A DNA stretch of 64,000 bases from NCBI GenBank assembly GCA_025603075.1, contig MU626322.1, positions 43,997 to 107,996 of the forward strand, written 5' to 3'. Both the position numbers and the translations under genes were made by a program. How positions within the stretch are numbered: position 1 is the first letter of the stretch; each line of letters starts with the position of its first letter. The notes beneath the pieces are model-generated. The model was given only the letters and a program-made list of their open reading frames with translations. It was not told the DNA's origin and made no database searches. This DNA comes from Neoconidiobolus thromboides FSU 785 (Eukaryota; Fungi; Entomophthoromycota). Below are positions 1 through 34,100 of this stretch, one piece after another.

Positions 1-495
1 ATATACTTATATTACCCTTCAGTACTAGTGTTTCCAAAACCAAAAAGATTTCCCATCAATGAAGCTCTAATCTTATATAAATCAGCTCAATTTGTGGCAG
101 AGTTTTTTTTAACAATCAAACAAAATAATATTCAGCAGAAAAACAAAAGTCAAACCACTAGTAAAAGTAATTATAATGAACTAGCCATCAACAACGAATT
201 TCATTTTAATTATAAAGCTCCATATTATACTTCAACTATGTATGTAGTGTACGTTTATTTATCATTTATTAGTGAAGAAAGATGGTTGTTGAGCCAGGGG
301 TTTGGTAAAAAGTTGATAGTTGAAGCAAAGGCTTATGTACTGAAATTATTAAAAATGTTGAAGGCTACCTGTGATTCTAAATTGAAAAGTGAAAGGTTAG
401 ATTCAAAGAGTACAATTCAATTTGTTAAAGAAAATTTGAGAAATTTTGAAATTGAGGATACATTATTATTATCTATCAATGAGATAATTAGCTAA
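1..495 (+). CDS. 3' part of Fungal_trans/MHR-like TF paralog A (5' end outside window)
   Basis: Translation (YYPSVLVFPKPKRFPINEA...EAKAYVLKLLKMLKATCDSKLKSE) aligns by eye with the C-termini of the ORFs at 13813, 18476 and 21465. Confidence 0.85.
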   Translation: MYLYYPSVLVFPKPKRFPINEALILYKSAQFVAEFFLTIKQNNIQQKNKSQTTSKSNYNELAINNEFHFNYKAPYYTSTMYVVYVYLSFISEERWLLSQGFGKKLIVEAKAYVLKLLKMLKATCDSKLKSERLDSKSTIQFVKENLRNFEIEDTLLLSINEIIS

Positions 496-6571: not shown

Positions 6572-7621
6572 TTATAGATTGAATACTCTATCATTATAAT
6601 TATAGAATACTAAGAAAGCAAAAAATCGAAGAGAAATGTAGTATTCCAGCTTTAAATTAGAACTATGGAGGATAAAGGATTGAATCTTATTTTCTAAAAC
6701 ATGAATATCTTTTGGTCTATCGCTTATACATTTAGAAAGTAAAGACTCTTTGTTATCATACAGTGTTAAACATTTAATATTATAATTGACCAAGTAAAAT
6801 GATGAATAATTTTAATATGATCAATAAGTATGCTAATACCAATATGAAATTGCTCATTCGATATTCCTTCCTTGATCGTTTCAAATTTAAAGTTATTTTG
6901 GTGCTACAATTTAATAAAATTTTTAATGAATGAATAATTTCTGATACTTTTGAGTTGTTTATGTTTGATGAATTAATGTGCAATACACAGTCAAAAAGGT
7001 GCTTAAAGAACACACCACATTTGTAGCAATAGTTAGAATAAGTTAACAAGGTTATTTCAATTGCTAATTTAGCTGCTTTATTCTCACTTAATTTTAATAT
7101 TGTATTCTCCCTTTTCCATAAGTCGTGAGTATTAAATTGTAAGTTAATATAAGAGTCACCAATAGAAACTAAAAGTACTGCTACTGAATAACACTACTTT
7201 CTTTCGCTGTTATTTTTATAATCTAAGTGTAAACCTAATAACATGGGGATGTGTTTTTTTTGTTTAAGAATTTTACTATAATCTTTCCACTCAGATAGCG
7301 CTTAAAAAATGGAAAAATAATGAAACTAAAAAAAACAGTCTCATATGGAATAGCTATATAGATTAGAAAAGTAATAAGATAGAGTGCTAAGATACTTCCT
7401 TTTAATTCATTTAATAACGTCATCATTAATTGAATAGCACTTAAAGTAATCTTTGATTGATTTGGTTTGAGATATTGCAGTAGTTTATCTTTCAAAAATG
7501 TTTTCAAATCTGACAACCTATTATTACAACCAATATGGTTTAAACCAACTAACATGATAGGGCAGATCAACATGTTATCTCTTCTTTTGTCTATAAATTG
7601 ATTATAAGTAAATAATAGCAA
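6572..7621 (-). pseudogene. Decayed Fungal_trans/MHR-type TF gene interrupted by a MITE
   Basis: TLSAIQLMMTLL...YIAIP [MITE 7242-7345] MLLGLHLDYKNNSERK*CYS resembles the MHR pattern SLxxIQALLLL...AIRMAxxLGLHxD...ERRR; in-frame TAG and later frame break. Confidence 0.55.
7242..7345 (+). mobile_element. MITE-like ~105 bp repeat copy
   Basis: TGGGGATGTG-T-run...AAGAATTTTAC...ATAGCGCTTAAAAAATGGAAAAA...ACAGTCTCATA. Confidence 0.8.
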
Positions 7622-7624
7622 TAA

Positions 7625-7727
7625 TATGTGAGTGTTTTTTTGGCTTCACTACTTTTTCTATTTTTAAGCACTAATTGAGCAGAAAAATTATTAGTAAAAT
7701 TCTTAAACACAAAAATACATCCCCATA
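7625..7727 (-). mobile_element. MITE-like repeat copy
   Basis: Same consensus, reverse orientation, TA at both ends. Confidence 0.8.
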
Positions 7728-7915
7728 TGTTTTGTTTTGTACTTTTACAGGATATGATCAATACAATAAGTAGCTATAAGAATATATAATTGCTTTTTGA
7801 ATATAGCCATGGCAACAAAATTACCTATGGTGTATTACTTACCAGCTTTTTTGTTTAAACCTAAGACTGAATTTTATTATATTTGATTCTTCAAATAGAA
7901 CAGAACATCAAAAAA

Positions 7916-8013
7916 TGGGGATGTTTTTTTGCGTTCAAGAATTTTACCAACAATTTTTCCATTCAAATAGTGCTTAAAAATAGAAAAGTAATGAAGCCAA
8001 AAAAACACCCACA
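7916..8013 (+). mobile_element. MITE-like repeat copy
   Basis: Matches consensus. Confidence 0.75.
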
Positions 8014-8398
8014 AATATTGCTTTCATTTAACTTTAAGTAACACTATGAATTTCATTTAGAACTTAACTTTGAGTAGGATTTTAAACTTGCCCATATTAT
8101 AAGCAAAGTTTTATCATTTTATGCTAATAACAATAAATTAATATTACAGAGCCTTTTAACTTATTGCGAATAATAAAAGTTTTAAAAAAAATTAAAAAAA
8201 GTTTTTATTTTAATATAATTATAATAATACGCCAGATGATATTAAATTTTTTTAGTAAAACAAAAATAGAAGAAAAAAGTATAAGCGGGAGAATGCCATG
8301 CTCAACTCAGTACATTTTCTTATACTTTTTCAAACCTCAACATTATCCATAGTCTCCTCCCTTATTAGTTAAATAATTAATAAACTTCAGCTTTAAAT

Positions 8399-13073: not shown

Positions 13074-13160
13074 TAGGGGTGTTTCTTTAGCTTCATCACT
13101 ATTTCCATATTTTAAATGGAAAACTAGTAAAATTCTTAAATACAAAAATACATTCCCATA
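13074..13160 (-). mobile_element. MITE-like copy, internally deleted
   Basis: Both termini present, central AGCGCT segment missing. Confidence 0.7.
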
Positions 13161-13240
13161 TCTTCTTTTTTTTCACTTTACTTACAATATAGAATAAAAA
13201 AGGTTTCTACCTGATATCAAAAGTAACGCGATGTCATGAA

Positions 13241-13337
13241 ATGGGGATGTTTTTTTTCATTACTTTCTCTTCTTTAAGTGTTATTTGAGGTGAAAGATTA
13301 TTAATAAAATTATCAAACAAAAAAATACATCCCCGTA
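13241..13337 (-). mobile_element. MITE-like copy
   Basis: Matches consensus, diverged. Confidence 0.7.
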
Positions 13338-13812
13338 TCATGCATGGTATCATGATATTAAGTAGAAATTTTTTTACAAAAAACTAAAAAAATCCTTTCA
13401 AAAATTCTATTAGTCTATTTACTTATTTGTATGACTTTTCCCTGCCTAAAATCTTGGGGGTCACTAAGTTTTAGATAAATATGAAGTTTATATATTGGTT
13501 AGCTAATTTTAATTATTATGCAATTTTTTAAAAGTTGGACTAAGAAATTTAGCATATATAGCTAGAGGTGTAACAATCATTTAAGAAAAACAAAATTGAT
13601 TCAATGCTATTACAAAAACTTTAACCAATGAAGACAAAATTAAACCAATCAAGTAACTAATTGATTTTATGAAATGAAATGTAAACTTAATTCATAATAA
13701 TAAAGGTTATTTTTCAGGTTATTTCTTTATTATAATTAACTATAATTTTTGATTTGATTTTCAAAAATACTGTTTTTATATAAATAAATTATCAAATATG
13801 TTAATCTCTTAT

Positions 13813-15723
13813 TTATCCAATAACATTATTGATAGATGTCAAGAACATTTTATCCACCACATAATTGTCCAAATTAATTTTGATAAACTCAATTGTACTC
13901 TCCGAGTCGCATCTTTCACTTTTCAATTTTGAGTCACAGGCAGCTTTCAATAATCTTAACAATTTGAGTACATAGCCTTTAGCTTCGAGGATAAATTTTT
14001 TACCGAATCCTTGATTTAGTAACCATTCTCCTTCACTAATAAAAGATAAACAAGCATAAATTATATACATAATGGAGTTATAATAAGGTCCATCGTATTT
14101 GACATGAAACCCAGCATTGGTAGCCATAGCACATCTAGCACAAGCAAAAGCACCACGATTTTTTCCATGTGTTTGTTGAATGTTATATCGTTTCATTATT
14201 AAAAAAAATTCTGATAATGATTCGACCGATTTGTATAAGATCATAGCCTCATTAAGAGGGAATTTTTTGGGTTTCGGGATAACTAGGACAGAGGGATAAT
14301 AAAGATAAATCATTACTAAATGAGCATAAGCGTTTAAATGATATTTGAATGCGTTAGATTGATAATATTTTTGTATTCTTTTCATGTTCCTTACTTGATC
14401 ATTTGACTCCATCCTTTTCACTGTGTCAGATATAGATTTGCTATATATCAATTGAGAGGTTAAATTGGTCAACGCTGTATTAAACTTTTCATTTGGTAAT
14501 TGCAACTCAGAATGAGGTATTTCATGTAGCTTATTCAACCTTGAATACTCCGACTTAACCTTTTGAATATGTGATACAATCTGCGTGAATGATTCGGTGA
14601 CTATTTTATCGCTATATATATTTTCAAACTTATTATCCGAAAAAATGCCGCTTATCTCCAAGTCAGTTGGTGAATACGAACTATTCAATTGTATACTATT
14701 TTTGGCACTTGATAGATTGATTTTTACTGGTTTAAAATTAGCATTAAAGCTTGGCATATTTGGAAACATTGTTAAAGAAGTATAATAAAATAATGATAAT
14801 GAATCCCATAAATTTGCAGCCCTTTTTTTTTCATTGAATTCAGTTTCAGGCTTTTTTACTCCTTTACCATACCACAATTTTCTTTTATCTTCCTCAGCCA
14901 TCTCTTTTTCACTCTTATCATATCCCAGCAACTGTGCCATTCTTATAGCTAAACTAAAATATCGTGTGTATGATACTAAATCTGATTTATAAGCTGAAAT
15001 AGATGCTAAAAAAAACAAACCAATTACATTTTTAAAGGATGAGTTTGCATATGCTTCCGCCAAACATTCCTTTGCTTTTTTAAAGTTAATTTTATAAACT
15101 TGCTTTGTAAGCATACCATTATTCAAGCCTGTAAAACAGGCTAACAAAGCTAGAAAAGCATAGGAAGACATATCAGGCTCGGTATTAATTAATAGAGCAT
15201 TGACTTCATTACGGGTAAACCACATTTGATATATATCAATATATTTTAAATATATAGTAACTCCAGTTTGTAAAAAAGTATCATATCCTGTAGTTGGTTG
15301 TTTTAACAAGGTAATTGGCTTAATATAATATGTGATGACTTCTTGATTGTTGATGTTTGTTAGTTCATGCTTATAAGCGTCTATCAATAGCTCAATATAA
15401 TCGTAGTCTTCATAAACGGATGCTGTGTCACGCTTTAACTGATCTAGTATTTGGACACACCAAGCTAGATATTCTAATTAGTAGTTAATAAGTTTATTAT
15501 TTGTTTTTACAAAGGCGCTTATTTACTGTGATAGAATGACAACTGCGATAAATTCAAGGCATCTGGTTGTTGTAAACTAGCTATTGCCTTCTTTGTATTA
15601 TATTCTAATTTATCCACGCGGCGCCGCCTCCAGTCCATATCGCTACGTAATTGTGCTGGTTATGAGGGTTAATATACATTAATTAAAGAAATAAGTGCAT
15701 TTACATTTCGATATTGTATTCAT
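13813..15723 (-). CDS. Fungal_trans/MHR-like TF paralog B, 3 exons, no Zn2Cys6 cluster
   Basis: 19-nt exon 1 (MNTISK), exon 2 SQLRSDMDWRRRRVDKLEY..., long exon 3 with YFSLAIRMAQLLGY and LWDSLS; GT-AG introns at the same positions as in C and D. Confidence 0.8.
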
Positions 15724-15855
15724 GATGAAGTTGGATTCTAAATAAACTAAAATGAGATATTGAAATTTTTGATTTTATTTTTTAAAATGCATTGTCAATT
15801 CATGCAATTTAAAAAGACACCTATCAAACTTAATAAAAATATAAGAATATGAGAA

Positions 15856-15960
15856 CATGGGAATATATTTTTGTATTGAAGAATTTTACTAACAATCTTT
15901 TCACCCAAATAGCGCTTAAAAAATGAAAAAAAAGTACTGAAACCAAAGAAACACCCCATA
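15856..15960 (+). mobile_element. MITE-like copy ~130 bp upstream of paralog B
   Basis: Matches consensus. Confidence 0.8.
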
Positions 15961-17473
15961 GTTTGATTTCAATTTAATTTGTCATAATTGTAAATCAAAA
16001 AATATTAGCTTGAAATAAAACAGTCACACATACTTTAGATAAAATATATTCATGTATTATTAGTGACTTATAACAAGAAGCCTATGAAGTATAACCCATT
16101 GTATTAAAACACTAACATGTCAATTTCGAGTTAGAAATGCCTCTCTGAAAATTCAAAATTTATGAGCCTTACTATTACAATTGACTAGATTATATTATAA
16201 ACTACTTGGGCATTTGAGCTTGAATTGTATCATAATTAAATTGAAACACTTTTTAAATAATTAAGTTGCGGCTATTACGGCCTTTTATGACTTTTTGAGG
16301 TAATTTTTATAATAAGATTATTTGTATAATCGATTTGTATAGTCAATCCCTATTTTTAGGTTTAATATGCCATATTCTTTCTCCTTAAATGAGCAGTCCC
16401 TTAGGTCTAAAGAGCTACAACAGTTGTAATGTTTGTTTTTATTCTAAGTTTAGTTGAATTTTGTTTAATCATTGCTATCAGATTTTCATTTATAGTGATC
16501 ATTATTTTTTAAAATTGGCAACACGAAGTGGAAGCTAATTTTTTCTTACTTCGTGTTCTAGATAACCCATTAATATTGTTATCTTTTTGTCCACTCTTAA
16601 TCAGTTGTTGTATTAATTTATATTATAATTTAACATATGTATTTTATTATATTATATTATTACTTATATCAAATTATATTTTTATGTATAAATACTAGCG
16701 ACAAATGTTAAAGAGGCAGAATCGTACTTTAGCGATATGACTAGCCTTGGCTTCTAGTTAAGATAAATACTATATTTTTTTCCTTTGGACTAATACCCAA
16801 TAATAAATGTCTATGTTCAAGAGAGGCCCTTCCAATTAAAAATATTACTTTGAAAAGCTCTCTTTCATATATTTATCAGCAAGAACTTTGAAACCTGTTA
16901 TACTCATTTGAGATCTATTCATTAAGAGACACACAAGACCTAAATGACTTCTACTTCTTACTGGAAGCAAATACAATCAAAGGAGTGGATTTATTAATTT
17001 AATATTGCAATTAAATTTCTTGAATTAAAAAAAATCAAATAAGCCATATCGAAATAAAAGCTGGATTTATATGATGCCTATTTATCCATCTTTTTTAGTT
17101 GTTTGATTATTAGTATAGAAGTGGTTTTTAGCCTGCTTTTATCATGAGTATCAAGATGCTTTATTTAATTATGCTAGGTATCAAAATTCTTTTATAAATT
17201 CTTTTGAAACGATATGAGAATATAGTTTTCCTCTCTTCATTTGATTAACTTATGAACTTTTATACACATTCAGCAATTGAAGTATTTAGATGCAAAATAC
17301 ATTAAAATATAAGCTGGGAGATACTAAGCTACTCTTGCTACTAGATCATATCCTTTGATTTAAAAATCCTCCCTTGTTAATAGTTCGGCAGCTAAGTTTA
17401 ATTTATGGTGGTTGAAGCATATGGCAACTTGATTTCGAAGTATTAAGTTGCATTAAAAATAGTCGAAATAAAT

Positions 17474-17570
17474 TATGGGGGCGGTTTTTGATTTTATCGC
17501 TTTTTTATTTTTAAGCACTATGAATGGAAAGATTGTTAGTAAAATTCTTAAATAAAAAAATACATCCCTA
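17474..17570 (-). mobile_element. MITE-like copy
   Basis: Matches consensus. Confidence 0.75.
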
Positions 17571-18475
17571 TATTATAAAATAAAAATCCATAATAATTGA
17601 ACTTGATTATTTAATTTGGCTTTTTGTTTATAAATTAATCTGCCATAATAATAGTACTTTATTTTTATAAAAATGATATTTTTCAGGAGTTCAAAGGAGG
17701 AATTGAAGATAGTTAAATGTACTTATTGAAGCTTGAACAATGAAATGAATGTGTTATAACTGGATTTAAAGGAACTTGCAATGAGGCTTTTCAAAGTATG
17801 ATAAAGGAATTTTACAGTTATATCATAAGAAGTAGAAATAATAAGAGATATTTTATCTATTATTAATGTAATAAAAACAGGTATAAAATTTTAAATATGA
17901 GCTTTTTGACTTAAAAAAGTAGCTTTATTGAGAACAAAACAGTATACTTGGCTGCATTAGTCTCATAATAAAAGTTTTATGGTCTTGGTGAACATTTGCT
18001 AACCTATCGGAGTTGATACAAATCTCTTGATATTGCTTTACACAAAATATTTGTTTTTTAGTTATAAAAATAGTAATATACAAAGAAATAAATGTAATGG
18101 TCACAAAGATAATATCTGAGACTGAAATACTATAATGGAAGTTTTTTATAAATTAGAACCAAAAATAATGTAATCCTTCTTGTGTTGTAATCAATCTATT
18201 AAAATATTTGTAAAAATTGAAAAAACTAATGATAATAGAATCAGCTTTATTTAATGCGATACAAACTAACATAAAAACAAAAATATCTAAACAATTTTTA
18301 AAGCATTTATACTTATAATAATTGTATAGTACAAGATGTTTTATCAAAAATATGAATTGATGTTATTTTTAAATATATTAGATATATTTTTTAGATTTAA
18401 CTTTTGAGAATAAGTCTATTTAACTTGATACTTATTTAAAAAAATACCTATACTATTCAATACATCAAATAGTAT

Positions 18476-20386
18476 TCATGTAATAATGTCTTTAATAGAC
18501 ATCAATATCATTTCATCTACTTCAAAACTATTTAAATTCTCTTTGATAGATTTGATTGTATTCTCCGAATCTAACTTTTCACTTTTCAATTTCGAGTCGC
18601 AGGCAGTTTTTAACAACCTCAGTAGTTTCAATACATAACCTTTAGCCTCAATCATAAACTTCTGTCCAAGCCCTTGGCTTAGAAGCCAGTCTTTCTCACT
18701 AATAAAAGCCAAATAAACATAAATTATATACATAAGCGGAGTATAATAAGGTGCATCATAATTTACCCGAAACCCATCGTTGCTAGCAAACTCGCATCTA
18801 GAACAAGCAAAAGCACCACGATTCCTACCATGAGTTTGTTGAATGTTATTTCGCTTCATTATTAAAAAAAATTCTGCTACCGATTGAGCAGACTTGTATA
18901 AAACTATAGCTTCATTGATATAAAACTTTTTAGGTCTTGGAAACACTAATAAGGAAGGGTAATAAAGGTATATTAGTATTAAGTTACAGAAAGCATTTAA
19001 GTGATATTTAAATACATTGGATTTATAACATTGTTGGATTGCTTTCATATCTTTTACTTGTTGGTTTAGCTCGATCTTTTTTGTTATTTCAAATAGGGAT
19101 GGATTGTTTACCAATTGACTGGTTAAATTCGTTAACACAGTATTAAATTTTTCTTTAGGTAATTGTAATTCATGATGGGGTATTTCATAAACTTTGTCCA
19201 ATCTTGAATAATTTAGTTTGATGTTTTGAACATGTGCTGTTATCTCAGCAAACGACTCAGCTGCTATTTTTTCACTGTGTACTTTTTCGAATTCATTATT
19301 TAAAAAAACACTGTTTATTTCCAAACCAATTGATGGATAAGAGCTATTCACTTCTAAACCATCTTGAATGTTTTTTGATAAATCGATTTTTACTGGTTTA
19401 AAGTTAACATTAAGCCTTGGCATATTTGGAAATATCGACAAAATAGTATAATAAACCAATGATAACGAATTCCATAACTCTATACCCCTTTTCCTTTTTT
19501 CGAACTCTACCTCAATCTCCTCCACTCCTTTAACATATTCTGATTTCCTTTTATTTTCCTCAAGCATCTCCCTTACACTCTTATTGTACCCTAATAACTG
19601 TGCCATCCTTATAGCTGAGCTAAAATACCGTAAGCTTACTACTGGTTCCGCTCTATACCCTGAAATAAAGCACATAAACAATATGCCAATCACATTGTCA
19701 AATGATGGATTGGCATATGCTTCCACTAAGCACTCCTTTGCTTTTTTGAAATGAATTTTATAAATATGATGTCCTAATGTACTATTTTTCAAACATAAAA
19801 AATAAGCCAACAAAACCAATATAGCATGGGAAGACAGATTAGGTTCAGCGTTAGTCAATAAGGCGCTGAATTCTTTGCGAGTATACCACATTTGATATAA
19901 GTCAATATATTTTAAATAAATCTTTAAACCAGATTGTAGAAAGGCTCCATAACCTGTGGCCGGTTGCTTTAGTAAGGTGTCTGGATTGACAAGGTAGACG
20001 ATATTTTCATTGTTGTTTATATTTACCAGCTCACGTTTATAAGTATGTATCAATAACTCAATATAATCATAGTCTTCATAAAGAGAAAAAGAGTCATACT
20101 TTAGTTGTCTTAATATTCCGATGCACCAGGCTAAATATCCTTAACTAAAATTAGTATTTATGTTTAATTTTTAAGGATATTCATTTACTATGATATGATG
20201 TCAATTGTCCTCCACTCAAGCTCCTTAGACGCTGTAAATGGGCTATTGTAGACTTTATATTATATTCCAAAGCATCCACGCGATAGCGTCTCTTATCTAT
20301 CTCACTGCGAGGTTTCCCTGTGTAATAAAATTTAGCTTATACCGGCTAAAGAAATTATATTATTTACTTTTTGATAGTGTATTCAT
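18476..20386 (-). CDS. Fungal_trans/MHR-like TF paralog C, 3 exons, no Zn2Cys6 cluster
   Basis: MNTLSK|RKPRSEIDKRRYRVDALEY...; YFSSAIRMAQLLGY; same intron positions as B and D. Confidence 0.8.
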
Positions 20387-21034
20387 GATAAAACTGATTT
20401 AAATAAATTGAAATGAAACGTTGGTTCTTATGAATGTCTATTTTTAAGGTGCATTTAAAATTTTATGCATTTTGGAAATCTGAATTAAATTTGTAGAGGA
20501 GAGGAGCATGATTTGTAATGTAAGATTGAAATTGAATGCACTTTACAGTTATTATAAAAATGCCTTGTTTTCACACCTATATCTATCTCTCTTTCGTCAT
20601 TGTCTTTTCTCTTGAAAGATTTCTTACCCTTCTAATATACCACTCCATTTACTAAATGATTTAAAAAAGGCTTGTTTTAACATATAAAGGCATCATTGTC
20701 TTTAAAACAAGTTAAAAATTTAGAATAAAAGGTGAGCACTTTAACAAAATTAAAGTAAGTAATAGATAAGTGTTAATATTGGCTATAACTCAAGAAATGA
20801 AAAAATATTAAAAATATTATTTTAAACTCAATTAAACGTTATTTATAGCAATGATAGTTACTGTTTTTTATAAACTATCATGTATTATGAATACAAGCAA
20901 AAAGGGTAGTAAATAAAAAATATTCTTATATACATTTAAAAATTAAAAAACATTAATTTGGACATAGCATTATTATAGTTTGTATAAAGAACTGAATGAA
21001 TATAAATTGCATAAATTATTTATAAAGTTAAGTA

Positions 21035-21132
21035 TATAGGAATGTATTTTTTTTAAGAATTTTACTAATAATCTTTTCGCTCATGGCGCTTAAAAATTAA
21101 AAAAAATTAAAAAATCAAAAACAACCGCTACA
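21035..21132 (+). mobile_element. MITE-like copy (diverged)
   Basis: Matches consensus. Confidence 0.7.
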
Positions 21133-21272
21133 TGCTCTATTTTTGATTTTGAAAATTCAACATTCAGTTTTTATTTAATATTTTATAAACATTATATAAG
21201 ATTGTTAGTTAACTATTTATTACAATTGTTTTTTACATTTTCTAGAATAACGATTTAATTCTATTAGATTCT

Positions 21273-21380
21273 CATATGGGAGTATTTTTTTTGACTTCAT
21301 TATTTTTTTCATTTTTTAAGCGCTATTTGAGCGGAAAGTTTGTTAGTAAAATTCTTAAATACAAAAATACATCCCCATAT
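21273..21380 (-). mobile_element. MITE-like copy
   Basis: Near-consensus: CATATGGGAG...ATACATCCCCATAT. Confidence 0.85.
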
Positions 21381-21464
21381 CTTTTAAATTTAACTTTTAG
21401 CATATTTTAAATATTTTTATATTTTGTTGAATAAATCACTATCAATACATTCATTTCCCCCTAT

Positions 21465-23376
21465 TTATCCAATAATACTATTGATAGATTTCAAAAACAT
21501 TTTATCTACCATATAGTTGCCTAGATTCTTTTTAATAAATTGAATTGTGTTTAATGACTCTAATCTTTCACTTTTTGATTCAGAATCAAGAACAGCTTTT
21601 AATAGTCTCAACAATCTTAGCACATAACACTTTGCTTTAATAATAAATCTTTGTCTAAGCTTTTGAGCCAATAACCAGTTTTCTTTGCTAATAAAAGCTA
21701 AATAAACATACACAACATGCATAATTGGGGTATAAAAAGGTCCTTCAAAATTAAGATAAAACCCATTGGCACTAGCTAACTCAGACCTAGCACATGCAAA
21801 AGCTCCACAGTTCCTACCATGACTTTGCTGGATGTTATTTTGCTTAATTATTAGATAGAATTCTGCTATCGATTGTGCTGATTTATTTAAAAGTATAGCT
21901 TCATTGATAGTAAATCTTTTAGGTTTTGGAAATACCAGTACAGAGGGATAGTATAAGTAGATAAGTGTTAAATGAACAAATGAATTCAAGTGGTAGTTAA
22001 ATGTATTGAACTCATAATATTTTTGGATTATTTTTGCCTTTTTTGTTTGCTTCTTTGAATCTATTTTTTTCACTTTATCATATAAAGATGGGTTGTAGAC
22101 TAATTGACTAGTTAAGTTAGTCAATACAATACTAAATCTTTCTTTAGTTAACTCCAATTCATGTTGAGGTATTTTATCTATAACGTCCTTTCTTAAGTAA
22201 TTTAGCTTTATTTTTTGAATATGAGCTACTATCTCAGCGGATGCCTCAGTCACTATTTTTTCACCATAAATCTTTTCAAGTTCACTGCTTGAAAAAGCAC
22301 CATCTATTTGCGATCCGCTCGGTGAGGAAGTATCATTTGCTTGTAAACCATTTTCAACACTTTTTAGTAAATTAGTTTCCATTAATTTGAAATTAACATT
22401 AAGGTTTGGCATATTTGGGTATATTGATAAGTAGGAATAATAAATAAAGGATAGTGATTCCCATAGCCTCATACCCCTCTCTTTTCTCTTAAATTCTATC
22501 TTAATTTCTTCTGGTCTTTTACTATACACCAAATTCCTCTTATATTCCTCAACCATCTCACTCGCACTCTTATTATACCCCAAAGCCTGTGCCATCCTTA
22601 TAACTAAGCTAAAATATTTTGTAACAGATGCCGAATCCGAGATATGAGCTGAAATAAAGCACATGAATAGTATACCAACTACATTACTAAAAGATGGATT
22701 GGCATATGCTCGTATCAGCCCTTCTTTTGCTTTTTTAAAATTAATTTCGTATATATGATGTGCCAACATGTTGTTTTTTGAGCGTGAAAAGTAAGCTAAT
22801 AAAGCCATAAATCCATGGGAACATAGATCTGGGGTATTGTTGGTTAATAAAATATTGACCTCTTTATGAGTATACCATACCTGATGTAAATTGATGTACT
22901 TCAAATAGATAGTGACACCATTTTCCAGAAAAGTGCCATATCCAGTAGCTGGCTGCTTTAATAAGATGACAGGTTTGATAATGTAGTCGAAGCTACCATT
23001 AATGTTAGTATCTTCTAATTCTTGTTTATAAATATGCACCAATAGCTCAATATAATCATAGTCTTCATAAAGAGAAAAAGTGTCCTGCTTTAGTTGACGT
23101 AATATTTCCATGCATTTGGCCAGATATTCTTAGACATCAGTTAGTATCTATTTATATTTTTGAAAAGTACTAATTTACTATGATATACTACTAATTGAAT
23201 TCCATCCAACCTTTTTAGACGTTCTAAGCGAGTTATTACAGACTTTATATTATATTCCAAAGCATCCACACGATAGCGCCTCTTATCTACCTCACTACGA
23301 AGTTTTTCTGTGTAATAGAAATTAATTTGTATTAGTTAAATAAACTATCCTATTTACTTGTTAATGGTGCATTCAT
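21465..23376 (-). CDS. Fungal_trans/MHR-like TF paralog D, 3 exons, no Zn2Cys6 cluster
   Basis: MNAPLT|KKLRSEVDKRRYRVDALEY...YH|KYLAKCMEILRQ; YFSLVIRMAQALGY. Confidence 0.8.
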
Positions 23377-23745
23377 GACAAATGAAAATTTACAAATCAA
23401 AAAGTAGAGTTTTATAGATTTTAGTTTTGAAATGTATCCTTATACAAGTCAAGAAATCTAGTTTAAGTTTATACGAAAAGAAAGCATATTTATGCAAAAG
23501 TTGACGGCATTTTGCTATTAGAATAAAAAGGCTTACTTTTACATAAGAATCAATAATGCCTTTAGAATTAAAAAGACTGAAATTAGAATAGGATATGAGC
23601 ACTCTAATAATCTCAAGTGAAATAACCAAGCATTACTATAGACTAAAGCTTGAAAACAAGTTGAAAAAAGAGATAAAATGTATTAAACTTTAAAAATTGT
23701 CTTACTTTATTTAAAAAAAATTGTTTTTTGCTTTAAAGTTTATTA

Positions 23746-23850
23746 TATGGGGGTGTTTCTTTTGGCTTCATTACTTTTTCTATCTTTTAAGCGCTATTTG
23801 AGTGGAAAAGTTGTTAGCAAAATTCTTAAACACAAAAATACATCCCCATA
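23746..23850 (-). mobile_element. MITE-like copy upstream of paralog D
   Basis: TA-TGGGGGTGTTT...ATACATCCCCA-TA. Confidence 0.85.
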
Positions 23851-24702
23851 TGCTTTCATTAAAAAGTAAAATGAGGATAAAAATACAGGAGACGTTAAGT
23901 ATGATTTTATTATTGCGTGCATAAATGGCTGCGAAAGTAAAAAAACATGAATTACTAGCAAACAAAAGCGACTATATGGGGCTGTATTTTTTCCATGTTT
24001 TAAGCAAAAAAAAACCCTGATATGTATTAATTGAAACTAAAGCCCAACTTTTTCCCGCTTCTGATTTTCTACATAAGTCGAACCTAAACATAAATACCAA
24101 ATAAAGAGTATGTATTGTCTAAATTAGTCAAGAAAATCAAATTCTAAACTATCAACAAAAAATATTAAAAATGTTTATTCATTATTTTAATTTTTGAATT
24201 GTAGAGATCTAATAAATTCTGATATAAATCAGACTGGAAAAAATTACTTTATATTTCATGTTGGTAAGTTCAAAGACCTGTCTAAAATTCACTTCATTTT
24301 ATTAAATATAATTATAAACATTTAGTACATATTTAAACTAATAAAAAAATTCCTTACTTTTACATAACTTTATAATTTCGATTTTAAAACTAAATGTTCA
24401 ATTGTTCTTGCAAGTAATGGCTCTATGTGAGTAAAATGAGCCAGAAGATGCAAATTGTTTTTTCCACCATAAATCATCTCATTGTATCTTGTATCAAGCT
24501 GCAGGTTTCAAAAACATTGGTATGTATTAGCATACACCTTTTTGAAAATTGTTTAAAATGATAAGATTGAATACTCACAAGTAAAATTTTAACAAAACGA
24601 TAAAGATTTATAGTTTTTTGTTAAGTTTTTTGCTTGCAGTTATCAACTGTCGGGATTGTATACACTTCAAAAGTGTACCATTTTCACATTAATCTGTGTA
24701 TG

Positions 24703-24803
24703 TATGGGGATGTTCTTTTTGATTCTATTACTTTTTCCATTTTTTAAGTGCTATTTGAGCGGAAAGTTAGTAAAATTCTTAAACAAAAAAATACATTCCC
24801 ATA
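24703..24803 (-). mobile_element. MITE-like copy
   Basis: Matches consensus. Confidence 0.8.
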
Positions 24804-25345
24804 CCCTTTTTTTAAAACGTTTGGCATATCACAAAATTAAAAGGGTTCTATTTTTTGCGCTACTTTTTGAAAGTTTAGCCTAATTGATATACTTTTGGCA
24901 AAAACAATCAAGCCAAAAAAATTATAAAAACTAATCAAATTTCAGAAATCAATTAAAAGATGGATTACAGTTTTAAAGCAAAGTTTAATAACTTTTTATA
25001 TCAGCATCAAAAATTTGTGAGTTTTATTTGTGTCATTGATTTTAAACTGTTAATTATCAAGTTTTCATAAAGCTTCAATAAGTATACAATAAGTCATTAA
25101 ACCTCCCTTTTATTTAAAATTGTAATCTATTTTTTGAATTTAATTGACTTTCTTTCAAAATTTCGTTTAGTTTTCACAATTTTTAACTCAATTGTTTTGG
25201 AAAAAAAGTGTATTAAAAGTCAGCCAAATTCCAACAAAAGTTAGCTTTATTTAAACAAAAACTTTAAGTGTGTCAATTTTAATAATTTAAGGTTTTGTGT
25301 ACCTTAATCTTTAAATTTGATTAAATTTGCAACGCTTTTCAATAG

Positions 25346-25448
25346 CATATGGGGATGTATCTTTTTGTTTAAGGATTTCACTAATAGTTTTTCCACTTAG
25401 TGTTCAAGAAATGGAAAAAGTATTGAAATAAAAAAAACACCCCCTATA
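25346..25448 (+). mobile_element. MITE-like copy
   Basis: Matches consensus. Confidence 0.75.
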
Positions 25449-27197
25449 TGTAATATTTTTATTGACCAAGTATAAAAAACTTTATAAAAAAGATATAGTT
25501 TTATGAGGATCAATTAATAAAAGTAAAAAATAATTAATTACTCTTATTAGTTTAAACAATTTTATTCAAACCCACCTTATTATCTGGGTCTTAATGACGA
25601 CTGAATTAAGTTGGGTTAACTGATCTCTACCCCGGTTTAAAGGGCTAGGCACTTGTTAAGATTAAATTTAAGTGGTTCTATTGTTTTTTTCTAAAGCTAT
25701 CAAAGCCGATTTTTTATGTCAATAATGTTTATCCATTATTTAGAGTCTATTTTAAAAATAAAAATTTATATGCTCAACAAACTGATATTCTTCAAAAATA
25801 CTTAGTGTCCAAGAGTAGCAGATAAAAAAATGTACTTTAGGTTTCAGAGATGTCACCGTTGAGAGTTATTTCAAGAAAAATATCCAAAATAAACAGTATA
25901 AATAAATTGTTATGAAATAAAACTCATTCTAAGTTGAAATAATATTAACATAAAATTTATTTATTTATACACTAAAATTACTATTTATTTTTATTTTATC
26001 TTATATTGCAAAACATTATACTCATTTATAATCAGTAATCTTCTACACCCTGTATAACTCAATAATAACATCTATCCAATTAAACTTAAACTTAATGAGA
26101 ATATAACTTAGTACTTTTAATATACTAAACAGGATTTATTAATAATCTTATAAATCAATAATTAAAAGAGCAAACAAAACCAAATAAAACAAAAGAATGC
26201 TAATTTGCTACTTAAAAATTAATAATAGATAAATACAGTACTTTTAATTACTGACATGCGCTATGTTTTTGAGGTATGAGGTTTTAAAGTTTGAACCATC
26301 AAATTTGATGTTTACGGCATCAATTGCTTTCAGTATTAGCAATTTAGTCAATTATTTCTTAAAATCGAATAGCATCTCATGATAGAAATCCAGCTTAAAG
26401 TAATGACCCACATCACTAAAATAACAAATAAAAGATCAAGCTTTTGATTAACAAATAGAACATTTTAGACAATAAAACTAACAACGCAACAAATAAACGA
26501 AAAATAGAACTTAACAATTTATTAATGAAAATTAATAATAGAAGCAACAATAAAGATACTATTTCATTTCTACTTACATATCTTATAAACAAAGGGAAAA
26601 AGGGTGACTTAAAAAAGGAAACTTAATTAATATAATGAGATTAAAGAAATAGGAATTAAGCAATAAATTTAGTTCCTCAAGTGGGTGAATAAAGAGACCA
26701 GTTTATAAATGAAAAAAAGAATGTTAGATCAACCGGAATCTAAAAATAGATTTTAAAGGAGTAAGCAAATAAAACATGAGAGGAAGTGGAGACTTTAAAT
26801 AGAAGAGGAATGATTGGGTAGTTCAGGATCGGTCTATTGGAAAAATAAGTTTAACTTTTAATTGGTCAAACTTGTAAATAGAAAATTATAAAAGCACAGC
26901 AAAAATACACAGTGATCTTTTTTTATAAAATTAAATTTTACAAGTTAGAAACTAAAGTTTAACTAATAGCCTCAAAAGTTCAGCATAGTGTATGAACTTT
27001 AGATGAAATTAAGAACCTTTATATTCAATTAATCTATATACCCATTTGATTTTCGTTTTCGTTTTATGTTCAATTAGACTACTCTATTAATTACTTTCCT
27101 AATCCCTAATATCATTTGATTTTATTTCGTTATTGTGTACTACTACGTTGTTGAACAACTTTCTTTGGTTAAACCTATTTAATAATATTATTTTACA

Positions 27198-27455
27198 ATG
27201 CTAGCTTCTCTATCTCCTCCTCATACCACTAATAATAAGGATAATTTGATTCGAAAGTTACAATATTATCTTAATTCGTATGCGATCAAAAATGCAATTT
27301 GTCCCATCTGTAGCTACAAATTAGAGTCTGTCAGTAATTTAGAAATCACAGATTTTAATCTGTGTATGTTATGTTCCAAAACCTACCCAGTAAATGATGA
27401 TGTTGATACTATTGTTCAAATGAGTGATATTGATGAAGATTTAATGATTCAATAA
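27198..27455 (+). CDS. Small putative zinc-ribbon protein, 85 aa
   Basis: CPIC-x17-CMLC followed by an acidic tail; isolated ORF. Confidence 0.45.
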   Translation: MLASLSPPHTTNNKDNLIRKLQYYLNSYAIKNAICPICSYKLESVSNLEITDFNLCMLCSKTYPVNDDVDTIVQMSDIDEDLMIQ

Positions 27456-28530
27456 ATTATCATTTTATTTAATTTGTTTTTCTGCTTTTTTACTATTTAT
27501 TATTATTTTTTATTTAACCTAATTATGAATTGTCTGCTTAGATTTTTGTTTTATTTTTAGACGCTATTTGCTTTGTTTAGGCAAATATTTTTTATGTTCA
27601 GTTTTAAAAAAGCTGTTAACAAATGGAAATATTGTTTTTGAGTTAAATATTGAAGCCATTTTAAATCAGGTTTTCTTTTTTTAAAGATTCAAGTATACTT
27701 AAATCAACAAAATGATAATTACCATTATGTTATAATTGGAATATTTAATATTCTACAAATATAAAAATACAAAGACACTTATTTTTATAATATGTGTTTC
27801 ATCAAATTAATTAATCTTCCATTTTTTTGTTATTTTTAGAGCTCATTATTTTTGTAATGATAAAAATAACTGAATACTTTATGGCTATTCCATAACTTTT
27901 ATAATAAATATATGTTAGAGATTAAAAATATATTTCATGAATTTACTTTGTTATTTTTTAACTGATATCTTTATTCTTAAAAGTATTATTAATTCTAAAA
28001 GCTACAACTTTATAATAAAACATAGCTAATGAATCATGTTCTAATTTTAGTATCATATCTTCAGCTTAAATAAGATTAAATTTAAGAGTATACTTTTAAC
28101 CAAAGTTAATAATTATAAATGATTATTAAGTTGAATTTTATTTGATCCAATTTGTTATATTATCTTAGCTGTTAGGACCTTATACACAACGTCTGGTAGA
28201 ATTGCATACTTGGAATCTTTAGTTTTTTTATAATTCATAATGAAAAAATTGTATTCTTATAACCTGTATTTTAAATGTTCTAAATATATCATTTACTAAT
28301 AAAAATCAAACCAGAATATTAAAATTGGATAGAGTGTCTATTTTGCTTATAAATTATGACATTCAAATACAGTTCTTTTAAAACTCATATTTATAATCTA
28401 TTATAACATGTATCTATATTATATTACGTTTTGTTTTAAAAATTCCAGGTAATTAAGTTAAAATGTTTTTAGTGAGTTATTTAAAACTTTATTATTATGC
28501 TATAAGCCACCTTATATTACAATTATTGTT

Positions 28531-28631
28531 TGGGGATGTTTTTTTTGGCTTCATCATTTTTTCCATCTTTTAAGCGCTATTTGAGTGGAAAAATTATTAA
28601 TAAGATTCTTAAACAAAAAAATCCATCCCCA
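28531..28631 (-). mobile_element. MITE-like copy
   Basis: Matches consensus. Confidence 0.8.
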
Positions 28632-28810
28632 TTTATTAGTAATTTTTACTAATAATTGCTTATCTTTCATGAAATTTTGTTAAATTCATACTACGCTCTT
28701 TATCCATATATCAGCTAATTTGTTTTATTTTAGAACTTCCAAAAATCTTTCAACTCTAGCTTAAGCATTAACATAACCTTCACTCACCGATTATTTAGTT
28801 TTTCAATTAA

Positions 28811-28918
28811 CATATGGGAATACTTTTTTTGACTTCATTGTTTTTTTCCATTTTTTAAGCGCTATTTAAGCGGAAAATTTGTTAATAAAATTCTTAAACA
28901 CAAAAATAGGTCCCTATA
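28811..28918 (-). mobile_element. MITE-like copy
   Basis: Matches consensus. Confidence 0.8.
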
Positions 28919-29215
28919 TTAACTCTTTTGGTTTAAATACTTCATTTATAGTCTTCTCCTTCTTACTACTCTTCCTTCAGAAACTTCATTTCTATAGATA
29001 CTATATACATTGAACTTGAAAGCCCTTGGCGCTAGAAGAAATGTCACCTTATGAAACATGTATCACAAAGTAAATAGTTAAAAATTATTACTAGCTAATC
29101 TTAAGGTTTGAGCATCTTTTGGTCTTTTTTATCTAAAAAACTCAGCCTATCTCATCTATGACTCGCCTTGAACATTGGTTCCCTTCTCTCCATTTCTGAA
29201 TAGAGTATATCGCTA

Positions 29216-29314
29216 TATATGGATGTATTTTTTTGTTTAAGAATTTTACTAACAGTCTTTCTTCTTAAATAGCGCTTGAAAATGGAAAAAGCGATGAGAT
29301 CAAAAACATTCTCA
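29216..29314 (+). mobile_element. MITE-like copy
   Basis: Matches consensus, right end diverged. Confidence 0.7.
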
Positions 29315-29789
29315 TCCCTTATTTAACGCCAACTTAGACTAGAAAAAATCCAAATTCATAAATACTTCAAAAAGCATCCCTTAAAAATAAGGTACTACTG
29401 GTCAAAATTTCTGTCTTATGATTTTATTCTTTATGTTGAATATATTTAAATTAAACCTCAAATTAGTCAAGCCACAGATATAGTTTAATATTGACTTTGG
29501 AATGACTCTAAACAAAGATCTTAGTTTAATATTTTAAACACCTTGGCATCTCAAGGAAAATAAAGTCTACTAAATATTAGAGATATAGGAAAAACCTAGT
29601 TTTGAAGCACTCAGTTTCAATTCATAATATTTTCAATATCGATTTCTGGCATCTAATAATTAAACTCAAATAGGTGGTCGTCCACTCTTTTTTTTCAACT
29701 ATTGAATTCTTTTATGATCCCTTAATTTTTAACCCACTAATAAGAAATGGATAGTCCATTCTTTTGAAGGATCGGAGAAAAAAAAATCT

Positions 29790-30660
29790 ATATATCAACC
29801 AAGGAATTTACATATCTTTACTCCCTCTCCATTCGACAATTTTATATCAGACTTTTCGAGCAAAGGGTAATATAACCTCTCTATCCTAAAGCCCTATTTT
29901 CGTATCCATCCATAGATCAAGTTCTCATTTTTAGAAGAAGTTATCCCTAAGCTCTCTACCTAAGCTCTCTATAATCATATACAGATACTCTCATACAACG
30001 TTCGCGCTACTAAATATTGCTCCTAAGTTTAAAGCGATTTTCGTTATTTTTTCTTATTACAACCAATTCAAGTTCAGGTTACTATGTAGATTCACTACCT
30101 ACTCAGCTACGTCGCATCTCTAAAAATATTTTTTATTTACATGAATTACCTGGTCCTAGTCTTCCTGGCTTACTCAATTCATTAAGTTTATGACGCTTTT
30201 TCCCTTCCTCTATAATTTTGAACCCTATTTAAACTTCTAATTATTTTGACTCGATATTGATCATCTATGAAACTTTCACAATCTTTTATTTTTACCTTCA
30301 GTCTTTTTATTCAACTTTAGTCATATTGTGTTGATAGATCAATAGACAGCCTTTTGAAGATCAAAAGTGGGATTTATTCCTCTTGTATTTCTGAGTTTTT
30401 TAAAGGAAGACAACTATTGTGCTTACTATCTTTTATTAAGAGACTTTATTGTTAATAATTGAGAGATTCAAGTTAAGTAACTTAACTGTCTACTATTTTT
30501 ATTATTATAATAAACCAATTGGGAATGATGCCTTTCAAGAAGGAGACAATCAATGAGTTATCTTGATTAAACAATACAGTTTACAAGTAATGGATAAAGT
30601 GATTATATAAAAATATATAGTTCCATTGTTGTAATAAAATATAAACCTAAAATAGGTCTT
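29790..30660 (-). mobile_element. Degraded non-LTR (LINE-like) retrotransposon reverse transcriptase relic
   Basis: Ordered remnants RPI (30651-30659), FDLQKA (30348-30365), RLGPG for GxxQG (~30150), SANVV for YADDV (29994-30008), KFLG (29798-29809) with RT-like spacing; many stops. Confidence 0.6.
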
Positions 30661-31171
30661 TTCAAGACTTTTACTTAGTTAATGATGTATTTCCCAGTGG
30701 TATACTGATATTATATATCGGTAAATAAATAAAGATAAAAGCTTATTAAATTTAAGTTTAGTTTATACAATAGCATTTATACAGTCATTTAACAAAGCTT
30801 TTAAACTATAAAAATATAAGATACATAAATAATAAAAATACTAAGATATGAATGTATGATTTGTTTTAAAATGAATATCTCGTTGCTCTTTTTCGAAAAG
30901 ATTAATTAATTAATATAAGTTTATAAGCCATGCTATCGCCTTAAACCATACTATCTCAATCATATATTGATGTTTATTGACAATAATATAAAATTATGAT
31001 ATTATTTAGTGTCACTTAAAAAGCTAAAAAAAATTTTACAACAAACCTACAGCTTCAACTTTGATTTGCCAAAAATGATAAATGCTTTTTAAACCACAAC
31101 TATTGGCTTAGCCCAACTTGGAAAGATTTAGCGCCAGCAAACGGTGAGAACCATTTTTAAGCCAATTTCTT

Positions 31172-34100
31172 ATGGATGAGCCAACCATTTATAGCAATTT
31201 GATCAAGTTAAAAGGGCTAGAGGAGGTGCAATGGTGTTGCTATTCACAGATTATTACAATGGGAGAGTTATATCATAAAGATGCTAGAGATAGTTCAATT
31301 TTTGTGACGTATAATGAGTTATTAAATAAGCAAGTGCCCTGCTTTGTTTCATTAGAAAGCTATAATGGAGATCAAGCTTTACTGATTTTATTTGTATTTT
31401 ATTTTTCGGAGGGAAGAAGAGTTAAGGTTACTAACGAGGATTTAAAAGGTTTGTTTTAGGTTTATTTCTATTTTTTTGGATTTGTTTTGATGTTCATTTC
31501 TATTAGAGGTTAAAAGTGGAATTATTACCAATGAAATGTTGCAAAAAACATCGGCTGCCGACTTATACCCTGATAAATCTCAACTATTTTCAATAAATAT
31601 TTCCAACGAAATTCATCCAAAATTCAATCAAAGTTCAACAATACCGTTAAAGTTAAATGAGTTTAATGAAATGGAGTTGCTTATATTTGCTATTAAAAAT
31701 TTATTTTCAAAGTAAGGATCACTATCTTTTTTAAATCATGATCTAACAATTTAGTGAAATTAAGAAAAAAGGAGCGATTCAGTTAGGAAGATCTTTTATA
31801 ACGCCGATAAAAAAAGTAGCTCAGATTCAAGGAACAAATGTAACTGAACAGATTAAGTACAAGTGTATTGATATTGATCCTTGGTATATGAATTCTAGTT
31901 TTTATTTCAAGCCAATTTCAAGAGATATCAATATTAAAAATATTTCTTTTTGTAAGTCTATTAATAACGGAGATAAGGTTTTATTAAGTCCACATGGTAC
32001 AGAAGGTATATTTTTGACTTTTTCTAAAATTAAAGAGCAAGAAGAAAACCAGTTATTGAATCTATGGGCTCATAAAACAAGCATCCCAATTGATATACTA
32101 GATTCGAACTATTATAATGAACATTTAAGTAGCCAAACTGGTGGAGTAAATTCAAATAAGTTTTGTATAATATTAATTTCAAAATTCAACATTCGACTTC
32201 ATTACCCATGTTCACTTGTTTTTATTGTTAATGATATAAATAAATTCGAGGAAGATGAAGCATCTAGTCAGCATAGTATTAAGGAATTACTCGATTCTTT
32301 GGTATCAAATGCACCCTCAAACAATTTAAATACAACAACGGAACCAGTGACGCCGCAGAAAATAAAAGGAAATGAGGATAATGTTTCAAAAAAAGAAAGT
32401 GTTCTTGAAAGTATGTTTGATAGAGTTAGCATCACAGATGTAGATAAATGGCTAGACTCACTTTCGCTTACGACCAAAGAAACCCCACCTAATTTACAGA
32501 ATAAAAATGGATTGATTGACACGATCCAATCTACGCATTTCGATACAGTTTCTCCATCAAATCCGGTCCCATCATTAATTTCAGGTAATATTGCTGGTAC
32601 AGATCCAACACCGCCTACAGATTATGAAGTTCCAATAGGACATGATATGTTGAACAATAGCCTCGGTTTTTTACCTGATCCATTAGAAGATTTTTGTATG
32701 GATGAGTTTGATAATTTTGGTAACTTTGAAATTACAGACACGGATTTTAGTTATTTTGATAAGAATGACTCAAAAAATAATTCAGCACACTCAATACATC
32801 CTACACTAGAACATGAGAACTTGAAAGCTACAATTAACGGAGGAAACATAATGGAAAAAGGAGAATCAAATCAGTATTTGTTTTCAAATGGTAATGAACC
32901 ACATACAATATTAAATGGAATTACAAATGATAATTTAAGTAATTTAAATGGAAAATATTTTAATAATGATAATTTGAACATGAAAAACGAATCAAATACG
33001 CCTACCGAATCAACACTTCATGAAAAACTAAGAAATCCCAATCTGCATGTAATTCTTACATCCTCAGATCCCTGGCTATCTATAAATTATAAGCCATTAA
33101 AAAATTTCATAGTCAATCGAGGATTCCTTGAAGGCGGAAAATATTCAAAATTTTCAAAAGAATTAACGAAAGCACTGAAAAAAATGCCTAGCAAACCTTT
33201 TAAGACATTAAAATATCGACCATACTATGTACCAGCTTCTTTGAAAGAGAAGGAAGATACAGATGAAGGTACATTGTTAAAAAGGTCAGGCAAAAAAAAA
33301 CGTATGGATCATAGTTGGTTGAAACAGATGCCAAGTAAAATCAGTCGCTTAAATGGGTATAAAGGGTATCAACTTACAGTCTCTAAAGATATTAAATCAA
33401 CTGCTTCAGCATCAAATTCAAATTATGAATGCTCTTCGGAATCATCTTGTATCCCCGATTCACCTCAGACAGGATTAGAGGGAAAAAGAGCCAATACTAA
33501 AGATAAAGTAAAAGAAAACGATTACTTAAATGAAGTTGTACTTTCGCCTAATTTTTCATTTGTTTGGTTAAGAGTGAATTCATCACACAATTGCAAAATA
33601 CATCCGCCCAATTTATTAATTAATGATAATATTAATGCATCACAAAGTAATACTGAAATCGGAACAAACAATATAAGTATATGGGAAGATGTAGATACAT
33701 TAAGGATATTTATGGATCAATTAAGGACATATTATTATTATCCAGATGATATTCATTCTATAAACTTTCATCAACTTCATGCATCATGTTATAATACTGA
33801 ACCATCAGAAGTATCATTATGTTGGAAAGATGTATTAAAATCATTACAATGTTTGACAACAATATTTAAAATTAACCAGCCCTCGCTAATCAATTCTAAA
33901 CTAAAGAATAAGTTTCACATAAGTGGTCCATTATCTATTAAGGATTTTCATAAAGCATTGAGTGACAGTTACTTGTATAAGCTTCAAACAAATAGCCAAA
34001 TACCTCAAACACTTGATCCTAAAATGAACCCATTTGCTTATATTTCTGGTCCTAAAATACAGGCTTATAATGTTTATAACACGCCCATTGAATTGGGTAT

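Follow-up and report, generated by a model that had tools for sequence, protein, structure and literature searches.

Headless Gal4/Cep3-type proteins, proposed as regulatory subunits without a DNA-binding domain of their own, encoded by a tandem gene cluster of Neoconidiobolus thromboides

Three neighbouring genes in a 64,000-nucleotide stretch of the genome of Neoconidiobolus thromboides FSU 785 (assembly GCA_025603075.1, contig MU626322.1, positions 43,997 to 107,996; hereafter the window) raise the question of whether the regulatory domain of Gal4-type transcription factors can work without the zinc cluster that reads DNA for it. The pair of a Zn2Cys6 zinc cluster and a middle homology domain (MHD, Fungal_trans or PF04082 in Pfam) constitutes the largest family of fungal transcription factors, and the role of the MHD is largely unknown. 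Proteins with an MHD only were judged to be mostly, or nearly all, annotation errors in the CeGAL paper (Mayer et al. 2023, PMC10141177), the latest large-scale analysis of them. According to the analysis described here, the three genes (designated B, C and D) encode headless Gal4/Cep3-type (CeGAL-like) proteins that would be regulatory subunits unable to bind specific DNA sequences by themselves, a reading given a probability of roughly 0.8. The protein plan consists of a short N-terminus, a basic patch, a three-heptad amphipathic helix and an all-helical MHD of ~500 residues, with no recognisable DNA-binding domain (DBD).

The exons were taken directly from the sequence. On the minus strand, B, C and D form a row of three intact tandem genes encoding 602, 603 and 603 aa, respectively, and their long minus-strand frames (524-548 codons) lie at 13813-15387, 18476-20053 and 21465-23111. 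All three are built on one plan, with a 19-nt ATG exon, a 129-nt exon 2 encoding the basic patch and the three-heptad helix, and a large exon 3 (1661 nt in B, 1664 nt in C and D) encoding the MHD and including the stop codon. Gene B is composed of exon 1 at 15705..15723 (ATG at 15723, MNTISK; the database fragment P0018 has the same start), exon 2 at 15527..15655 and exon 3 at 13813..15473. Gene C is composed of exon 1 at 20368..20386 (ATG at 20386, MNTLSK), exon 2 at 20189..20317 and exon 3 at 18476..20139, and gene D of exon 1 at 23358..23376 (ATG at 23376, MNAPLT), exon 2 at 23179..23307 and exon 3 at 21465..23128. Introns 1 and 2 are in phase 1 with GTAAAT donors, and intron 2 contains TACTAAC in D and TACTAAT in C. 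Across exon 1, intron 1 and exon 2, C and D are 77% identical over 242 nt. The NCBI/JGI model K502DRAFT_349133 (P0001, 603 aa) is identical to gene D as read here, first exon included. The layout of three intact genes of ~590-610 aa with a common structure starting from a 19-nt ATG exon, as put forward in the original prediction made from the letters of the window, was thereby confirmed. Full-length analyses were performed with P0001 as the representative of D, and B and C were treated exon by exon.

The assignment of the large exon to the MHD was examined by profile comparison, by structure prediction and by the search for intermediate sequences. By Pfam, the Fungal_trans score of D was 14.8 bits (E 0.015; cut-off 23 bits), B and C gave no match in the PF04082 search, and PF04082 was matched by just 3 of 20 family members (best E 1.2e-4). 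For the profile comparison, a family profile (A1) was built from the alignment of 20 paralog exons and a second one (A2) from 12 canonical or Fungal_trans-bearing proteins; exon 3 of B and exon 3 of C matched A1 with E values of 5.7e-192 and 4.1e-190, respectively. Alignment of A1 with A2 by hhalign gave a probability of 98.15% and an E value of 6.5e-14 over 275 columns, with the RMAQ-LG helix, the W-rich helix that follows it and the LYYP/LLHR helix in register. The motif AIRMAQxLG, which had been predicted for all three genes, is present as AxRMAQxLG in B and C, and D carries VIRMAQALG. When A1 was run against 40 Zn-cluster open reading frames (ORFs) of the same genome, the strong PF04082 proteins were the sole matches (E 1.3e-9, 1.7e-8 and 8e-6), and the region matched in these canonical proteins was the core ending in the RMAQ-LG motif. 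A HMMER search with A1 among 1.84 billion representatives returned 54 proteins at E <= 1e-3, the weak tail of which (E 1e-5 to 1e-3) includes Zn2Cys6-MHD factors. Two proteins of Conidiobolus coronatus above the Pfam Fungal_trans cut-off, P0022 (A1 E 2e-28; 23.8 bits) and P0041 (A1 E 9e-6; 44.4 bits), act as bridge sequences between the two groups. A word-index protein search with the large exon of D, too insensitive for this family, recovered three proteins only, all from the same contig, and a profile search of the PDB sequences gave no match at E <= 10.

The AlphaFold2 model of the large exon of D is all-helical, with a predicted local distance difference test (pLDDT) value of 77 and a predicted template modelling (pTM) score of 0.75. 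Of all MHD proteins, Cep3 alone has had its structure determined experimentally (bioRxiv 10.64898/2025.12.09.693112). Cep3 chains were the best Foldseek matches to the model (probability 0.99-1.0, E ~0.014), nothing being found at E <= 0.001 by Foldseek alone, and all of the top 10 matches in VIA-align were Cep3 as well (Z 10.8-12.6, ~340 residues aligned, model residues 55-540), generic helical repeats ranking after them (Z <= 10.1). Such Z-scores are ambiguous alone for a helical protein and are not ambiguous together with the sequence evidence. On the combined grounds of the hhalign comparison, the Cep3 fold, the C. coronatus bridges and the profile matches within the same genome, the large exon is a divergent MHD, and the domain identity given in the original prediction is upheld, with the window genes themselves remaining sub-threshold for PF04082.

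A cysteine-bearing loop was noticed inside the MHD of the copies on the contig of the window (C65), with the pattern HG(R/K)N(R/C)GAFAC(A/S)R(C/S) and two to three Cys (window 14128-14169 in B, with equivalent sites in C and D). The loop has low pLDDT (model residues 430-438) and is present neither in the plus-strand paralog at the window edge (L005) nor in distant paralogs, and a metal site there is unlikely.

An MHD without a zinc cluster may simply be an ordinary Zn2Cys6-MHD factor whose zinc-cluster exon was missed, as was the case for the ~86-90% of MHD-only models for which an upstream DBD was found (PMC10141177), and a 19-nt first exon is the type of feature that gene callers get wrong. 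The missing head was accordingly looked for in several ways. A six-frame scan for the Cys6 pattern, covering the 64-kb window and 30 paralog loci together with 1.5 kb on either side of each, gave no match. A genome-wide PF00172 search gave at least 117 Zn_clus matches, so the method works on the N. thromboides genome, and none of the 117 adjoins any family locus; on the contigs common to both (C19, C65, C133, C196 and C278), the clusters are many kb off or inside other genes. A local Zn-cluster hidden Markov model (HMM), made from 40 clusters of the same genome and run unfiltered on all stop-to-stop fragments of at least 8 residues, reached a maximum of 9.2 bits (E 0.8, paralog locus L015) across the window and the 30 family loci, the best window fragment having 8.4 bits on the wrong strand, against 35-50 bits for the positive controls at four loci. 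Cys6, C2H2 and CX2CX6C half-cluster patterns were absent from either strand at 12-32 kb, and the full-length members gave no match to the zf-C2H2 Pfam family.

The 5' ends of the genes were considered in the same respect. The ATG of B is preceded by an in-frame stop at a distance of 17 codons, that of C at 4 and that of D at 21, and the 63-nt open stretch upstream of the ATG of D contains no AG, which leaves no acceptor by which an exon further upstream could be spliced on in frame. In distant paralogs (20-30% identity), the initiator Met is located in the basic-patch exon, a few residues before the patch and with stops immediately upstream, and the independently annotated homologs of C. coronatus and Entomophthora muscae likewise start a few residues before the basic patch. 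A Cys6 cluster occurs in none of the 33 database proteins at E <= 1e-10, those of C. coronatus and E. muscae (P0062) included. The zinc-cluster head is truly absent from the family, as had been claimed when no Cys cluster was seen in the exons and no conserved splice acceptor before the ATG; the family is a genuine MHD-only branch, and a missed exon is largely refuted as its explanation, with a very small chance left to it.

As an observation beside gene D, the ~8.5 kb upstream of it (23400-31880) is repeat-rich and AT-rich and contains no ORF of at least 120 aa on either strand and no family or Zn-cluster signal. Two proteins of the chytrid Polyrhizophydium stewartii (P0055 and P0063) begin with MMCTYKNS at the expected last zinc-cluster Cys and continue into an LQERLERLE coil; judged by this start, they resemble the truncated-model artefact of the CeGAL paper, unlike the N. 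thromboides family.

What is retained in front of the MHD was described from exon 2. In D, a basic stretch runs straight into V-D-A-L-E-Y-N-I-K-S-V-I-T-R-L-E-R-L, the a/d positions of which (V, L, I, V, L and L) make three clean heptads, and residues 12-37 form one helix in the full-length model (pLDDT ~75). The family N-terminus follows a pattern of Met, a few residues, a basic patch (often K/R-x-R-S-x-x-D), an R-[ILV]-x-x-L-E-type coil and a conserved Y-L-x-W, and P0062 of E. muscae retains the P-R-S...R-V-E-E-L-E block of the window genes. In canonical factors, a linker and coil of the form K-R-G-P-x-K-G-Y-I-E-x-L-E-x-R-L comes after the sixth Cys, and the family segment has the same position and flavour; a profile of the N-terminal 80 residues lands directly after the Zn cluster in five canonical proteins, with weak scores of ~0.5-6 bits. 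The helix that had been predicted to be kept for dimerisation is found as a clean three-heptad coil at the site that corresponds to the canonical post-cluster coil. Between C and D, the protein identity is ~70% for exon 2 and 59% for exon 3, which indicates that the N-terminus is at least as constrained as the MHD.

With basic residues directly before the heptads, one predicted helix across them, an R-S-x-x-D...R-V-D/E-x-L-E block conserved from Entomophthora to Neoconidiobolus and an N-terminal exon more conserved than the MHD, the segment could be taken for a minimal dimeric element of the basic leucine zipper (bZIP) type, that is, a replacement DBD by which the proteins would bind DNA directly as true transcription factors. 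Against this, neither bZIP nor any other DBD family was matched at E <= 1 by ten full-length members, and the basic stretch is short (5-13 residues), broken by acidic residues and devoid of the bZIP N-x7-R signature. Canonical factors have the same kind of basic linker, yet it is the zinc cluster that reads the bases. Direct DNA binding is regarded as unlikely, and subunits without base reading of their own are preferred.

The extent and age of the family were estimated in the whole assembly (24.6 Mb, ~27% GC). The A1 profile matched 71 pieces in the genome; ~33 family loci have uninterrupted frames of at least 480 codons, ~10 are cut by contig ends and at least 6 copies carry multiple stops. 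Clusters of the family are located on contigs C8, C70, C65, C165, C41 and C159, and the headless family is comparable in size to the set of PF04082 matches in the genome (36). C65 carries five intact tandem paralogs and one pseudogene. The proteins of the five intact C65 copies are 54-62% identical; the proportion of synonymous differences (pS) is 0.62-0.72, which is saturated (dS 1.3-2.5), the proportion of non-synonymous differences (pN) is 0.20-0.27 and dN/dS is 0.13-0.20. Low dN/dS together with saturated pS identifies them as old duplicates under purifying selection, and the copy count and the dN/dS comparison, both proposed as checks in the original prediction, spoke for an extensive family without relaxed selection.

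The same figures bear on the view that the genes are decaying or non-functional duplicates of no biological consequence, which the family pseudogenes with multiple stops and the repeats resembling miniature inverted-repeat transposable elements (MITEs) around the genes might suggest. The frames of B, C and D are intact over 602-603 codons and their splice sites are conserved, pN remains much lower than pS despite the saturated synonymous sites, and members exist in other genera; by the selection signal, decay of B, C and D is refuted, and its chance is negligible.

A quick maximum-likelihood tree was constructed from headless (34) and canonical (12) rows. In it, the C65 copies, five in number, group in a clade with 100% support, and the headless rows cluster, with 2 label changes against 10.9 expected by shuffling. 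Family members from C. coronatus and from E. muscae are placed within subclades of N. thromboides, with values of 99-100 in the Shimodaira-Hasegawa-like approximate likelihood ratio test (SH-aLRT); several subfamilies, and with them the headless state, are therefore older than the split of the genera. The predicted lineage-specific expansion stands as regards the copy number in N. thromboides and does not stand as regards the headless architecture, which is older and common to C. coronatus and E. muscae. CONCODRAFT_79516, 79908 and 76543 are among the homologs in C. coronatus. Of the proteins that do possess a head, those closest to the family are ordinary Zn2Cys6-MHD proteins from Basidiobolus, chytrids and Glomeromycota.

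ORFs of ~600 aa with Zn_clus (contigs C118, C326, C133 and C303) were tried as headed sisters and rejected, matching neither the family profile nor PF04082. They belong to dozens of single-exon ORFs of ~540-640 aa on these and other contigs (L035-L069) with a clear N-terminal Zn2Cys6, often in tandem, whose C-terminal 500 residues give no match to PF04082 or to the headless family profile. These ORFs seem to represent another zinc-cluster expansion particular to the lineage, the regulatory domain being unassigned.

The following course may be proposed for headless Gal4/Cep3-type subunits. A canonical Zn2Cys6-MHD factor would have lost its Cys6 head, probably before the divergence of Conidiobolus, Neoconidiobolus and Entomophthora, and the headless form would then have expanded by tandem duplication in N. 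thromboides. The basic patch may be used for nuclear import and perhaps for non-specific DNA contact, and the coil and the MHD may allow homo- or heterodimers to form, as they do in Gal4 and Cep3; homodimerisation and co-factor binding are known for the MHD of PnPf2 (bioRxiv 10.64898/2025.12.09.693112). With no base-reading module, the proteins would act through partners, being recruited by DNA-binding proteins or titrating them, with the MHD as the putative module for binding a signal or a partner. Other family members, canonical zinc-cluster factors and general co-regulators are possible partners; canonical Zn2Cys6-MHD proteins of the same genome are located, for instance, at C15:84400-87400 and C19:24800-33950. 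The roles suggested in the original prediction, namely heterodimeric modulator, dominant-negative partner, ligand sensor or DNA binder by the basic segment, are conjectural throughout. This partner-subunit model takes a substantial share of the total probability, somewhat short of half.

A role outside transcription would be in keeping with part of the same material, the MHD-like scaffold then serving as a cytoplasmic adaptor or sensor, or as a structural assembly factor in the manner of Cep3. The one MHD protein solved so far, Cep3, belongs to the kinetochore, the MHD drives protein-protein contacts while its biochemical function is unknown (bioRxiv 10.64898/2025.12.09.693112), and the neighbouring genes, namely those for a WD40 protein, a NIPA transporter, Med13, an aminotransferase and a RhoGAP, are unrelated and housekeeping and give no functional hint. 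Some 33 intact, rapidly diversifying paralogs suit a regulator family better than a structural one, however, and the proteins have kept, in conserved form, a linker and coil characteristic of dimers bound to DNA, which makes a non-transcriptional role improbable.

Several points weigh against headless regulatory subunits as the reading of B, C and D. In Pfam, the genes of the window themselves stay below the Fungal_trans cut-off. The structural Z of 11-13 is within the chance range of helical repeat proteins, and the Foldseek E value is only ~0.014. The N-terminal segment corresponds to the canonical linker and coil by its position, and the likeness is statistically insignificant. Support for expression and for the 5' end comes from the gene model and from conservation. 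In the tree, one Zn-bearing protein of the chytrid Batrachochytrium (P0051), which has a long branch, is placed in the polytomy at the base of the headless group, for which reason a single loss of the head is likely rather than proven.

In comparison with CeGAL proteins (Gal4, Cep3), the headless family has a homologous MHD (hhalign 98%) with Cep3 as the best structural match, a basic segment and putative short coiled coil at the corresponding position relative to the MHD and a similar size of ~600 aa; it differs in being without the N-terminal Zn2Cys6, which is the defining feature of CeGAL, in starting ~10-35 residues before the coil and in an MHD so divergent that most members fail PF04082. 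The nominal architecture is the same as in the MHD-only proteins of the databases (IPR007219 without a DBD), and the C. coronatus homologs carry the UniRef label 'Xylanolytic transcriptional activator regulatory domain-containing protein'. Most of those database proteins are truncated models with a Zn2Cys6 exon within ~1 kb upstream, whereas the absence of the head in the headless family was verified in the genome and is kept in dozens of paralogs and three genera under selection. The Id/Emc helix-loop-helix (HLH) proteins and the microProteins, which also keep a dimerisation module and have lost the DNA-reading one, offer an analogy only with the proposed mechanism; there is no homology, and the headless family additionally keeps a large regulatory domain. 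In those supplementary files of PMC10141177 that were searched, Conidiobolus does not occur, nor do the C. coronatus homologs under their UniProt accessions, and nothing specific was found in the literature on Conidiobolus transcription factors or on functional MHD-only examples.

The headless family provides a verified instance of an MHD-only class whose reality was questioned by the CeGAL authors. Linker, coil and MHD are isolated from DNA reading in these proteins, and the question of what an MHD does without a head is therefore directly testable with them. A gene family of the Entomophthorales would be overlooked by transcription-factor censuses that leave out proteins without a DBD, and in N. 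thromboides this family is about as large as the MHD gene set detectable by PF04082. More tentatively, and with a doubtful outcome, an MHD may act without an attached DBD, and an ancient and diversified headless Gal4-type clade in the Entomophthorales may form a regulatory layer of its own, either as subunits that partner or titrate zinc-cluster factors or through DNA binding by a new basic-helix dimer in place of the zinc cluster.

With regard to the remaining members of the tandem cluster, a fourth paralog (L005, contig C65:42824-44485, plus strand) is cut by the window edge, its 3' end occupying window 1..495 (family profile E 6.2e-57, profile positions 373-531). The N-terminal sequence for its exon-3 frame was supplied by P0003 (599 aa), the putative product of this locus. 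The fifth intact copy and the pseudogene are located just upstream of the window on the same contig, the latter at G000:C65:38444-39598 (plus strand), outside the window, with several stops and in three frame pieces.

A supposed decayed gene of the MHR type at 6572-7727 was rejected, since the family profile found nothing there at E <= 1 and the ORFs at this place are partly MITE-like repeat. Copies of the MITE-like repeat (40-120 nt each, 79-98% identity, both orientations) are distributed between and around the paralogs at 13125-13164, 13264-13341, 15847-15932 (inverted), 17492-17581, 21047-21112 (inverted), 21266-21385 and 23737-23856, and also at 7235-8041. The repeat creates spurious small ORFs (FKRYLSGK...), and it may have aided unequal crossing-over in the cluster or may simply have accumulated in the intergenic spaces.

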